Below are positions 4,965-60,886 of a stretch of DNA of 64,000 nucleotides, piece by piece. The position numbers and the translations under genes are program-made. Origin of the DNA: Guillardia theta CCMP2712. Lineage: Eukaryota > Protista > Cryptophyta. The stretch covers positions 1 to 64,000 of the forward strand of contig NW_005434489.1 of NCBI RefSeq assembly GCF_000315625.1, written 5' to 3'. The notes beneath the pieces are model-generated. The model was not told the origin of the DNA. It made no database searches and saw only the letters and a program-made list of their open reading frames with translations. Numbering within the stretch: position 1 is the first letter of the stretch; the number at the start of each line of letters is the position of its first letter.

Positions 4965-6230
4965 ATGATTCACTCTTGCAAGAGCTCCTCCACATCGTGT
5001 TTTCTTAGGTCAGGAGTGTTGTTCCTAGCTGGCCTTGCGCTCCTCCCCACCTCCTCCTCTCTCCCGCGATCCTCTCAGGACATGATCTTCCCCCAATGGC
5101 GCCCCCACTCGCTCAGAGGAGGAAGCGCCGGCCATCACAAGAAACGAGAAGCGGATCCGCCAGCAGAGGCTACTCCGAACACATCCAACAGGACAGCCAA
5201 CTTCCTGAGAGCCGCCGCCCCTGTTGCCTCCTGCTACGCAGAGAGGAAGAGGCAGAGCTTGTCATGGCAGCCGTCCCCGGCCTCAGACTTGCACGACAAC
5301 GTGAACTTGATCGCGCTCTTCCTGCTCGGGGGAGGAGCGATCGCTGCTCTGGCGCTGCAGGACCGCAACATGCATGACCTGCTCACAGTGTCCGGCTTCG
5401 TGTACATCCTCCTCGACTCGGTCTGGATCTTCTCCCAGCCCAAGATCGTGAAGAGCCCGGGGATGGTGGGATCGCATCATATCGCCACGCTCCTGGTCCT
5501 CCTCGATCCCCTGCTGCAGCCGAAGCATCGGGTCTACACGTCTGCATGCCTACTGGTAGAGATCAACACGCTGCTGCTGCTGCTGAGGAGGAGGGTGTCA
5601 TACTCTGCGATCGTCGAAGTTCCCTTCATCTTGACCTGGGTGCTCCTGCGGAACATCTGGTACAGTCGTGCTTGCCAATATCCTCATCCCCTCCTCTCTT
5701 TCTCCCCCTCGCCTTCCTCCAATCTTCCTCCTCTTTCCCCCTCGTCCCCCCTCTCCAACACACCCAACACTTCCGTCCTCCTTCGTCATCCTCACTCGCT
5801 CACTCACTTGCTGCCTATCTACTTATCCTTGTTCTCTCCTGCCTCCTCCTTGACTGCCTCCGTCAGGTACCCGCTCCTCATGTTCTACTTCTTTCTCTGC
5901 TTTTCTCCGAGCACATTCATCCCCCTCCTCCCCTCGTCGCTCTCCTGGGTGATCGAGATGAGGACGAAGATCGAGCTCCGTAATCCCGTTCCCATGATGG
6001 GCGTCTCGCTCCTGTACTTGCTCCTGCTCCTCCTCCTCCCCTCCGCTCTCCTGACGCTCCCTGCCAGCTCCTGGGCCATGGTATGCATATTTCAGTTCTA
6101 CTGGACAGCACAGGTCAGGATTGTCCTGCTTGGCTCTCGGCTGACGTGTGCTCAGCTCTTCAGCGCTCACCCGTGGATCTGGGGAAGGAGGAAGCCAACG
6201 GCCAACGGCAAGGAGAAGAAGTACTTGTGA
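4965..6230 (+). CDS. TLC (TRAM-LAG1-CLN8) domain membrane protein; start uncertain
   Basis: Motifs YILLDSVW, HHIAT, LLVEINT, TWVLLRNIWYP; several TM segments; introns 5660-5866, 6014-6067, 6114-6155. Confidence 0.75.
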   Translation: MIHSCKSSSTSCFLRSGVLFLAGLALLPTSSSLPRSSQDMIFPQWRPHSLRGGSAGHHKKREADPPAEATPNTSNRTANFLRAAAPVASCYAERKRQSLSWQPSPASDLHDNVNLIALFLLGGGAIAALALQDRNMHDLLTVSGFVYILLDSVWIFSQPKIVKSPGMVGSHHIATLLVLLDPLLQPKHRVYTSACLLVEINTLLLLLRRRVSYSAIVEVPFILTWVLLRNIWYSRACQYPHPLLSFSPSPSSNLPPLSPSSPLSNTPNTSVLLRHPHSLTHLLPIYLSLFSPASSLTASVRYPLLMFYFFLCFSPSTFIPLLPSSLSWVIEMRTKIELRNPVPMMGVSLLYLLLLLLLPSALLTLPASSWAMVCIFQFYWTAQVRIVLLGSRLTCAQLFSAHPWIWGRRKPTANGKEKKYL

Positions 6231-6435
6231 GCACTCCTAGAGGGCCGACGACGAGGATGCTGCGATCGTTGACGGACGCAGCGGGGGGAGGCTGGCGGAG
6301 GAGGCAGAGGAGGGAAGTGGAGGAAGGCAATGGCGGCGGTGGGCTATGAAGATGTTGGATGCGAGGACGGGAAGGAGGAGGAGGGGAGGAGGTGGTGGGT
6401 AAGGAGGAGAAAGTGAGCGGCTAGTTGGTCTAGCA

Positions 6436-9400
6436 TTATTTTTTCTTGTTTTCAGTGGTTAACTGTTTGTCGGCTGACCTTGCACATGTCGCTATGTTAC
6501 AGCAGCTACAACTCGCACCTGACGTTGATGTTCATGGCTGCGAGCTCTGCAAGAAGATACCTGCTCGAACAAGTCAGAGGCGTGAGGGGGGGGGGTATGA
6601 GGAGAAACAATGGGGAGGGGAAGAGGAGGAGAGAACGAGAGGCTGGGCAAGAAGGAGTAGATGAAGGACGGGGGGAGGAAGGAGTACAGCTACAGCTGTA
6701 TTGGAAGCAAGACGAGGGGGGGGGGGGTGTGGAATGTCACCGGAAGACGAAGGGAACGGCGACACAGGAGACGGAGGCTCCTGTCTTGCATTTGTGGCAG
6801 TAGAGCCGCTGCTTTCCTCGTTGCCTTCCTGCTCCTGCAGAGTTGTCAGCTGTGGAGCTGGACGTATGGAGGAAGAAGGAGGGGGGGAGGCGGCGGCGGC
6901 GGCGGCGGCAGCAGCAGCAGCAGCAGCAGCAGCAGCAGCAGCAGCAGCAGCAGCAGCAGCAGCAGGATAGTGAGTGAGGTGGGAGGACCTGGAGTGAGAA
7001 TCTCCTCGGGGGNNNNNNNNNNNNNNNNNNNNNNNNNNNNNNNNNNNNNNNNNNNNNNNNNNNNNNNNNNNNNNNNNNNNNNNNNNNNNNNNNNNNNNNN
7101 NNNNNNNNNNNNGTCAGATCCCCGCGGCCTCCTCCTCATCCTCCTCCTCCTCCTCCTCCTCCTCCTCCTCCTCCTCCTCCTCCTCCTCCTCCTCCTCCTC
7201 CTCCTCCTCCTCCTCCTCCTCTCCTTCCACCCTTGTCAGCTCCTGCTCCCCTTGCTACATCCTCTTTTCATCTCCTCTAGAATCATCCTTCCATTCCACT
7301 AACCCCCCCATCCACCTAACCCTGCTGTTTCTCCCTCTTCGTCTCCTCCTCACCTCAGCAGGAACGACGCGCCGTGAGCAAGCAGCCCATCCCTCTCCAT
7401 TTCCCCGAACCTCACTCCTCCTCCGGCCTTCCTCCCCTTCACCGGCTGCCGCGTGTACTTGTTGACGGGCCCGGTGGCTCGGCACTGGTACTTGTCCGAC
7501 ACCATGTGGCGCAGACGCTGATAGTAGACGAGGCCCATGAAGATCTGCGCCTCCATCATCATTCCGCTCACTCCGCTGTAGAGCACTTCCGTCCCGTGGT
7601 AGTTGTACCCTGCTGCTCGCAGCTGCTCCCCGAAGTGATCGATCGCCCGCGTCTCCTCGTCGAAGCGGAAGGGCGTCGAGTCCGGGAAGTAGCCGTGCAT
7701 GGCCCCGGCCTTGCCTGCCATGCTCTCGACGAGCATCCCGATGGTCATGCGGGAGGGAAAGGCGTTGGGGTTGATGATCACGTCGGGCGTCATGCCGGTC
7801 TCCGAGAAGGGCATGTTCTCCTGCGGCCATAGCGTGCTCAGCACGCCCTTCTGCCCGTGGCGGGATGAGAACTTATCGCCGATCACGGGCCTCCTGTCGT
7901 ACCGCAGCTTGATGCTGATTTTCTGCAGCGGCTTCGTGGGCCCGTCCCCCAGCAGCCGCACCGCGTCCACCTGCACGGCCTCGGCGCTCTTGTGCATGAC
8001 GCACTTACTCCTCCCCGTTGCAGGGTCGACGGAGCGGTAGAGCTCCTGCCCCTGCTGCAGGATGCTTCCAACCTGCGGCAGCCCGTCCCCGTCCAAGTGG
8101 TCCACGTACGAGTCGTCCTTGGGGTTATCAAACCTGCTGCCGGGAGGAGCTGACTTGGTCAGGTCAACGATGGTAGTGGTGTACACGTGCCCGTTGCCGA
8201 AGCCGCGGTCGTAGGCGCCCTTGTTGATGATCATGGCGTCCTCCATGTCGAACCCGGTGTAGGAGATGACGGCAACCACCGCGTTCGTCCCCGTCGGGTA
8301 GTCATCCATCCTCAGATTGTCCTGCGCCTGGTTCCGCACGAGCGGCACCTGCGGGGTGAGGATGCGGTAGACCTTGTTGTCCACCCTCTCATTGTAGGCG
8401 TACATGGGGGTCCCCATGGTCTGCTTGCCCATCTGGCACTGGTACATGTTGCGGGGGGACTGGTTCATGTCCGAGAAGGGAGTGCACTGGGCCACCACCG
8501 ACAGCATGTTCATGGGGCTCAACTCCATGTGCGTGTGCTGCCTCGGCCGGACCTCCTTCCCCATCACCGCGATCTCCATGTGGATCTGCTCAAAGGTTCC
8601 GATCCACTCGTGCTGCCCGCTCGAGAGCTGCCGCACCGGCCGCATCATCCTCGCCGGGGTGGTGAACAGGAACACGCCCGGCCACAGCCCGTTGGTCCTG
8701 GGAGGAACGTGTGCGATCTCAAGGAACTCGGGTATCCCCCGCAGCCCCTCCGCCTTGAGCAGCCGCATCCTCCCTACCAGCTGCACAGCCTCCTGCGCTC
8801 CGACTCGCCCTATCATCCTGCCGTCCAGCATGATAGGCAGCGCCTCCCTCCCCATCACCACCGGCAGCCCTCCGGCAGAGACCGGGGAGGCTCCGAGGGT
8901 GAGAACCGCGTCCTCGACGGCCTTGAGGGCGGCAGGAGGGACGAAGTGAGAGTGGAGAGTGCAGACGGAGGTCAGGTGGTTGAGGAGCCCGCAGGGCCCT
9001 CCGTCAGGAGTGTGAACGGGGCACACGAAGCCCCAGGACTCCGGCAGCAGCTTGCGGACGGCGGTGGACTTCATGGTTGTGAAGAACTGACCCCTGTGGA
9101 TGCTGCGGAAGTGAGAGAGGTATCGGAGGAAGTTGAGGCGCTCGGCAACGATAGTGTAGCCGGAGACTTGGGAGAGGTCAAGCCCGGTCTGAGAGACTAG
9201 GTTGCCCGTCGACATGAAGTACTCGATCTTCCTCCCGATGTCGACCGGGTTCCTCATCAGCAGCGACTCGATGTAGCTCTGGTCGGCGAGATTGACCTGG
9301 GAGGCGAAGGAGGAGCCGGGCCGCTGGTCCTTGAGGAAGACGTCCTGTATGCCTGCAAGGTAGTCTTGCAGCTTCTCCTTCACCATCATCGTCATTAAGT

Positions 9401-59865: not shown

Positions 59866-59912
59866 AATGTGGCCAGGAAAGGAGAATCAGCAGATTCGAG
59901 GCCAGGATGACT

Positions 59913-60886
59913 TCAGGACTTCTTCCATATCTTGAAGATTCCAATCTCCTCTGCTTGCCACACCTATGTGCATGTTTAAACTAGATTGTAAAAAATGCCA
60001 ACGCTTACCGGATGCAGCTCCTTCTCGGGAATCTTCTGGAATGCTAAGCCACACTTGGAGATATTTCGCAGAAAGTCCTGAGAACTTCAGTGAGGGTACA
60101 GATCACTAGGCTCGTGCTCCTACCAAATCCTTCTCCCGTCGCAGCTCAAAGCTTAGCACGAAACTTGTCTTGTCGTCCATGCTGTGTTGGAGGGTCTTTA
60201 GCAGGTGAGGGGTGCTAGCGTCTGAGTAGATGAGGTCTGATCCGACGATGAAGTCCCATCCTTGCCCCATGTCCGTCACGTTCCCCCAGTCCGTTGTCTC
60301 TCCTGGGCTACCCCACACGCACTCTTGAACCTGCCACGAGCCCGGGCAGTGAGCCTTGAGGTTGTTCTCCACGTTCTCTTGCAGCAAGCTTGTATGCCCA
60401 GGCAGCTCTGTCATCGTGACATGTGCTCCTGCTGATGCTAAACAAATGCCCACGAGGCCGCAGCCCGATCCCAGGTCAAGCACGCGCTTATCCTTCCATT
60501 CGATGCCGCTTACCTCGAAGTACTTGACCAGCACCTGATAAAAGTCAGCTCAAGGCAGTGCATGTGTCTCCAACCTTTGCAGCATCCCAGAGAACAGCAG
60601 CATGACCCGTCGATGTGTCTTGCTTGATCCTGAAAGTGTTGGTTCCGAAGTCAAAGTTTTCGTAGAAGATCGTGCTGGCCGCTTCCGTCATAACACAATC
60701 TTGATGGCTTGAAAAGAAGGAATGCTGGCCTCCACGAAGGGAGAAGGCTGGTTGGAGGTGGAGCAACTCAGAGCCTCCTTGCACAGGAGAGGTGAAGCAG
60801 AGGATGTAGAACGAGGCTCGGAGCAAGCAGCAAAGAGGCGAAGCTCTACGACTGAAGTTGGCACGAAAGGAGAATCTTGTGAGCAT
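59913..60886 (-). CDS. METTL21/EEF1AKMT3-like protein lysine methyltransferase with N-terminal leader
   Basis: GHAAVLWDAA, KRVLDLGSGCGLVGI, DFIVGSDLIY (DxxY), FELR. Confidence 0.88.

Follow-up and report, generated by a model that had tools for sequence, protein, structure and literature searches.

An LRGG box, identical to the end of ubiquitin, closes N-terminal leaders in Guillardia theta and is a candidate periplastid processing or sorting site

Periplastid proteins of cryptophytes and diatoms are known to carry bipartite signals, in which an N-terminal hydrophobic signal is followed by a short, basic, acid-poor spacer, and no conserved motif has been described for the C-terminus of the transit-peptide-like segment. 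In a 64,000-nucleotide stretch of nuclear DNA with very short introns from the cryptophyte Guillardia theta CCMP2712 (scaffold JH993149.1:1-64000, hereafter the window), at least three unrelated genes appear to encode an N-terminal import leader whose final four residues, LRGG, are also those of ubiquitin. These leaders resemble the bipartite signals in their basic, acid-poor spacer and in being attached to cytosol-type proteins, and probably also in the hydrophobic signal and in the non-aromatic residue after the likely end of the signal peptide (judged by eye); they differ in ending with a strict [L/V/M]RGG box. The precursors of ubiquitin, NEDD8 and ISG15, which are cut after LRGG by deubiquitinases or ubiquitin-like-protein proteases, share with the box the tail L-x-L-R-G-G, its place at a junction and the absence of proline after the GG, whereas here no beta-grasp domain stands upstream, and it is the downstream protein that would be released and the short leader discarded. 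In Toxoplasma, an organism that uses the symbiont-specific endoplasmic-reticulum-associated-degradation-like machinery (SELMA), the protein PUBL also has an RGG at an apicoplast/periplastid leader-mature boundary; it differs in being a single protein, whose RGG has been read as a relic of polyubiquitin (PMC5487736). The Plasmodium export element (PEXEL), the Toxoplasma export element (TEXEL) and the oomycete RxLR motif are similar in that a short motif lies about 15-40 residues past the signal peptide and is followed by acidic sequence, and PEXEL and TEXEL are protease sites. These motifs differ in sequence, in their aspartic proteases of the endoplasmic reticulum (ER) or Golgi and in directing export to the host cell, and no PEXEL/TEXEL motif (RxLxE/Q/D or RRLxx) was seen in the leaders, where the conserved box is x-[LVM]-R-G-G. 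Lastly, the polyglycine of plant Toc75 and the LRGGG of red-lineage Omp85 proteins (PMC2222254) are likewise Gly-rich leader elements of proteins that stop short of the stroma, and differ in belonging to a single family, in not copying the ubiquitin tail and, for the plant element, in being cut elsewhere by an enzyme of the signal-peptidase type. In the library searched, no paper relevantly connects LRGG with cryptophytes or with Guillardia, and the only pairing of RGG with the periplastid compartment was the PUBL case.

LRGG is encoded at 5112-5123 (+) in a gene with a TLC domain, at 15858-15869 (+) in a TXNDC9/PhLP3-like gene, at 38182-38193 (-) in an orphan gene, and at 60728-60739 (-) in a METTL21-like gene. 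All four sites had been put forward in an earlier, sequence-only reading and are confirmed at the sequence level; they lie in real reading frames near the N-terminus, at residues 28-53, and only the extents given for two longer motifs required correction (MRLRGG occupies 38182-38199 and FSLRGG 60728-60745). The TLC and METTL21-like families provided 13 leaders for a tripeptide test. RGG is the only tripeptide found in all of them (13/13) and LRGG occurs in 10/13, the best non-overlapping tripeptide reaching at most 7/13; none of 2000 composition-preserving shuffles reached 13/13. Across species the box is written with different codons, namely CTC, CTG or CTT for Leu, GTG for Val, ATG for Met, AGA, CGA, CGT, CGG, CGC or AGG for Arg, and GGA, GGC, GGG or GGT for Gly. 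Since the codons vary freely, the constraint acts on the protein, not on a nucleotide motif or through a GGA-rich codon bias; the GGA/AGG bias that the sequence-only reading had named as a threat to its proposal is thereby ruled out for these two families. An element acting at the DNA or RNA level and reading GAGGAGGA was also considered and rejected, because the orthologs use other codons. In five orthologs the start Met is preceded by in-frame stops, which shows the N-terminus to be complete. That LRGG ends an N-terminal leader is thus borne out in two unrelated families, where selection across cryptophytes acts on the protein, and in a third family the box is in frame.

The TLC-domain gene has a putative start at ATG 4965 (+), in an open reading frame that is open from 4776; this start was chosen by inference from orthologs with complete N-termini. 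Residues 1-32 (4965-5060) form a signal-peptide-like stretch whose core, VLFLAGLALL, has a mean Kyte-Doolittle value of 2.92 over 10 residues. A 17-residue transit-peptide-like spacer and the box (residues 50-53) follow at 5061-5123, as indicated by ortholog conservation, and then come a variable tail and the TLC domain (5124-6230; Pfam PF03798, E=5.7e-6), over which the open reading frame reads through at least one intron. A word search yielded eight cryptophyte TLC homologs, including those of Teleaulax amphioxeia, Baffinella frigidus and Rhodomonas lens. Their N-terminal 70-190 residues are unalignable save at one point, [L/M]RGG, which stands after the hydrophobic core and before the start of the conserved body (W-Q-P-S-P / H-D). 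The [LM]RGG is found at the equivalent place in seven of seven cryptophyte lineages (six independent ones and G. theta); the eighth homolog has a different N-terminus, which is probably artefactual.

The METTL21-like gene is annotated as GUITHDRAFT_120570 (59913-60691, -; protein P0166 maps here; Pfam PF10294, E=2.4e-23), with a start at MTEAAS (ATG 60691) that lies 12 residues past the box. Upstream of this annotated start the frame stays free of stops over 122 codons, which include an ATG at 60886, a hydrophobic stretch and LRGG. From the open frame and the architecture of the orthologs, the unannotated start at ATG 60886 and a signal-peptide-like stretch (residues 1-37) can be placed at 60776-60886 (-), followed by a 12-residue spacer and the box (residues 50-53) at 60728-60775 (-), the latter supported by ortholog conservation. 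The annotated model leaves the leader and LRGG (60692-60886, -) in what is labelled the 5' untranslated region, and many ortholog gene calls are likewise short (227-228 versus 279 residues); the short form is frequently all that gene callers report, and this accounts for the G. theta annotation. At least five further cryptophyte lineages have METTL21-like orthologs with a hydrophobic core, a spacer and [L/V]RGG, so that [LV]RGG is kept in 6/6 lineages. As a family control, among 150 METTL21-family representatives from all life (46,056 residues), [LVMI]RGG has three matches, one of which is a cryptophyte ortholog leader. The ancestral start Met stands directly after RGG in three lineages and, in a fourth, eight residues on, past a Gly-rich run; of the three RGG-Met orthologs, two have the exact ubiquitin tail LRLRGG. 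A leaderless relative, P0012, begins at this ancestral Met, and together with the position of the Met past the box this suggests that the leader was added to an older protein. The Met after RGG is seen in orthologs P0011, P0176, P0164 and P0161, its G. theta counterpart lying 12 residues on (60689-60691), and its retention could permit a leaderless cytosolic product to be made by alternative initiation. A metagenome protein of 550 residues, P0028, which is a distant member of the METTL21 family, has a hydrophobic N-terminal stretch with LRGG directly after it and may represent another such leader, possibly from outside the two families.

In the TXNDC9/PhLP3-like gene, exon 1 (15741-15902, +) is defined by transcript contigs and offers two candidate start codons, ATG 15741 and ATG 15771, which place LRGG at residues 40-43 or 30-33, respectively. 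The contigs, which come from three studies, start at 15751-15783, and the splice from 15902 to 15946 keeps the LRGG exon in frame with exons 2-14 (15946-17522, +, also from transcript contigs), the poly(A) site being at 17522. The mRNA thus comprises 14 exons and a poly(A) end, and encodes 273 residues, or 263 if translation begins at the second ATG. From residue 68 on, the longer product aligns with a TXNDC9 homolog that has no leader and itself matches the PhLP3 chain 7nvm_P of the PDB; because homology begins there, LRGG lies in an N-terminal extension. The gene also contains a 24-nt microexon (16141-16164, +) and 13 introns, 12 of which are 43-63 nt long. One intron (16813-16863, +) admits no GT-AG placement, its best reading being GA..AG with the support of three transcript assemblies, and could be either a non-canonical intron or the product of a base error in the assembly. 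An AT-rich insert (14190-15750) ends directly at the 5' end of the transcript; given the start of the contigs at 15751-15783, the promoter must be located at the border of this insert or within it.

The fourth site belongs to what the sequence-only reading called an orphan. It is in fact the N-terminus of GUITHDRAFT_148045 (-), which, like GUITHDRAFT_120570, has identical coordinates on JH993149.1 and in the window, and the absence of homologs outside G. theta holds, no orthologs having been found there. Its first exon (38047-38274, -) contains LRGG at residues 28-31 and is supported by P0168, P0216 and P0215; the gene is expressed, since the transcript-derived proteins P0168 and P0216 share with the model P0215 the start ATG 38274 (MSIG...) and match at 100%. 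An upstream exon that would provide a signal peptide was looked for and rejected, no in-frame splice being visible by eye and the transcript open reading frames starting at ATG 38274. No Pfam domain was found in either the 506- or the 204-residue version. The orphan could be either a genuine member whose leader is unusual or a chance occurrence. The 506-residue model (38274-33345, named SET-domain protein in UniRef) spans the assembly gaps at 36106-36601 and 33919-34116, which makes it unreliable towards its 3' end, and it conflicts with the transcript-derived proteins of 204 and 132 residues, which end earlier (stop at 37430).

Frame, position and conservation, not bare count, set these LRGG sites apart. 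Indeed, the six-frame count of LRGG in the window is 12, against Markov expectations of 8.8, 11.6, 15.8 and 17.7 (orders 1, 2, 3 and 5, respectively), so there is no raw enrichment. No coding support was seen for the other eight matches, among which only 47144-47155 was inspected closely. As a rough estimate, about 0.05 N-terminal LRGG would be expected by chance (~22 genes x 60 N-terminal residues x ~4e-5 per residue), versus the three or four seen.

Charge and likeness to the ubiquitin tail were compared over 15 leaders. The charge flips at the box: the 20 residues before it contain 15 acidic and 35 basic residues in total, and the 20 after it 50 acidic and 24 basic. All 15 leaders have [L/V/M]RGG, that is, Leu, Val or Met at the position of ubiquitin L73 (LRGG in 12/15), and Arg is invariant three residues before the leader/mature junction (15/15). 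The position of ubiquitin L71 is hydrophobic in 11/15, the exact LRLRGG is present in two lineages, and Pro never follows the GG directly. Further glycines often follow, giving RGGG or a longer stretch (five of the 13 ortholog leaders, and the TXNDC9-like and orphan sites). Signal peptides were judged with the Kyte-Doolittle hydrophobicity measure, and on this measure only, the hydrophobic core reaches 2.2-3.8 in most orthologs. The residues after the likely signal-peptide ends, judged by eye, are L, G, R, T, S and L, and the spacer between core and box is 12-30 residues long.

Taken together, the conservation and the position of the box make it very likely that the site functions in processing or sorting. 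Its best explanation, to which we assign a probability of roughly 45% on sequence evidence, would be a three-part presequence, carried with confidence by at least three of the four genes, that is cut after the GG by a ubiquitin-type cysteine protease in the periplastid compartment. In brief, (i) an ER signal peptide would take the precursor into the plastid ER, (ii) a basic, transit-peptide-like spacer of 12-30 residues would drive its crossing of the periplastid membrane via the ubiquitin-dependent SELMA, and (iii) a boundary box, hydrophobic-x-[L/V/M]-R-G-G, would copy the C-terminal tail of ubiquitin/NEDD8, so that a periplastid cysteine protease with the specificity of a ubiquitin or ubiquitin-like C-terminal hydrolase could cut after the GG and free the mature, more acidic protein. 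PhLP3, which assists CCT as a co-chaperone, and the METTL21 enzymes, which have Hsp70, VCP/Cdc48 or eEF1A-type proteins as methylation substrates, are of the cytosol type, so that in a cryptophyte a signal peptide on them suggests a periplastid destination; the cryptophyte nucleomorph encodes CCT, tubulins and Hsp70. As for the protease, some deubiquitinases and viral papain-like proteases cut short LRGG peptides, if slowly, and the narrow cleft of ubiquitin and ubiquitin-like C-terminal hydrolases suits a strict Gly-Gly, combined with Leu at -4 and a hydrophobic residue at -6, better than any other known protease class does. A putative deubiquitinase with a Ufm1-specific-peptidase domain (Gt2_270) is encoded in all four sequenced cryptophyte nucleomorph genomes, its role being unassigned (PMC6559170), and is a candidate for this enzyme. 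The box would, if this explanation is true, be a sequence marker for the periplastid/nucleomorph proteome.

Several observations weigh against the ubiquitin-tail mimic or against its generality. Typical deubiquitinases require the ubiquitin fold, which these leaders are without: only 12-30 residues separate the hydrophobic core from the box, and no ubiquitin domain was found by Pfam upstream of the tail, so that the leaders at most mimic the tail of ubiquitin. Moreover, ptDUP, the periplastid deubiquitinase of diatoms, has no cryptophyte member (PMC12412216, PMC5756292). The proposal of the sequence-only reading that LRGG is a ubiquitin mimic cut by deubiquitinases accordingly gains from a likeness to the tail that extends beyond LRGG and loses from the missing fold and the missing ptDUP. 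The RGG that stands ahead of the ubiquitin domain in Toxoplasma PUBL was found to be unprocessed and dispensable (PMC5487736). If the cut falls after the GG, some of the proteins would begin with Asp, Asn, Glu or Gln, residues that would be destabilising if the compartment has an N-degron pathway. The signal peptides are also uneven. The sequence-only reading had two sites following a signal-peptide-like stretch. Among the four G. theta sites the TLC core is clear (2.92) and the METTL21-like core weak to moderate (1.64), and the remaining two have no convincing signal peptide, the core being weak in the TXNDC9-like protein (1.36) and absent from the orphan (0.84), which may be a chance match. 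The hydrophobic core is absent from the Rhodomonas TLC ortholog as well (0.68). Finally, no ortholog of the TXNDC9-like protein was obtained, two metagenome scans having given nothing or only a leaderless TXNDC9 from an unrelated lineage, with the spliced protein not used as a query.

A bolder form of the favoured explanation, which we regard as doubtful, is that a single cut at the ubiquitin-tail mimic removes the targeting peptide and any ubiquitin attached by SELMA in one step. It bears on an explicit puzzle, namely how imported ubiquitinated proteins are protected in cryptophytes, which have periplastid proteasomes and no ptDUP (PMC5756292, PMC12412216). If true, it would explain how cryptophytes can be without ptDUP yet have a periplastid 26S proteasome.

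M16 metallopeptidases, the stromal and mitochondrial processing type, cut presequences with Arg at -2 or -3. The same box could thus be cut by another periplastid transit peptidase such as one of these, its likeness to ubiquitin being convergent or partial. The invariant Arg at -3 and the basic leader are what such an enzyme would call for, and this alternative is at ease with the lack of a ubiquitin fold in the leaders and of ptDUP in cryptophytes (PMC12412216). However, M16 sites are loose, and the invariant Gly-Gly, the Leu/Val/Met at -4 and the hydrophobic residue at -6, which together reproduce the L73/L71 pattern of ubiquitin, would be left unexplained, which makes an M16-type cut unlikely.

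The polyglycine stretch of plant Toc75 stops onward passage through the translocons of the plastid envelope. By analogy, the box could remain uncut and serve for sorting or retention, confining the protein to the periplastid compartment, either by halting passage through an envelope translocon or by being read by the Cdc48-Ufd1-Npl4 of SELMA. The RGGG and longer Gly runs in five of the 13 ortholog leaders and at the TXNDC9-like and orphan sites are in keeping with this, as is the LRGGG motif reported for Phaeodactylum and Cyanidioschyzon, where it lies in the soluble N-terminal part of their Omp85/Toc75 homologs (PMC2222254). Most boxes, however, have only two Gly, and the Met directly after RGG in METTL21-like orthologs and the sharp charge switch fit a leader/mature junction better, so that we consider an uncut retention signal rather improbable.

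That LRGG arose by chance from purine-rich GGA/AGG sequence and carries no meaning is very improbable; such an origin would concern individual sites, the orphan site at 38182-38193 above all. In its favour, the six-frame count of the window equals expectation, three of the four sites read GAGGAGGA and the orphan has neither signal peptide nor known orthologs; against it, the box is conserved across species with free codon choice in two families and all four in-frame matches fall within the first 53 residues. For the leader class as a whole, an origin by chance from composition was rejected, because its conservation, its free codon choice and its position are not ordinary even though the six-frame count is.

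The ubiquitin-tail-like box bears on how periplastid-resident proteins are recognised and matured. Because the box is strict, conserved and placed where the leader ends, this question, and that of ubiquitinated import, become directly testable. Furthermore, G. theta gene models can miss such leaders, as GUITHDRAFT_120570 does by starting past its own, so that proteome-wide targeting predictions are biased.

None of the four leaders is touched by an assembly gap. The TLC gene ends about 780 nt upstream of a gap at 7013, the METTL21-like gene (60886-59913) has no gap nearby, and the TXNDC9-like transcript (15751-17522) is unbroken in three transcript assemblies. A fifth leader, at 47144-47155 (-), was considered and rejected: its LRGG is out of the coding frame and lies just past a CT-rich intron of a TLD-domain gene. 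This intron (47173-47346, -) translates to a Leu/Ser run resembling a signal peptide, and is a trap for raw six-frame motif scans.

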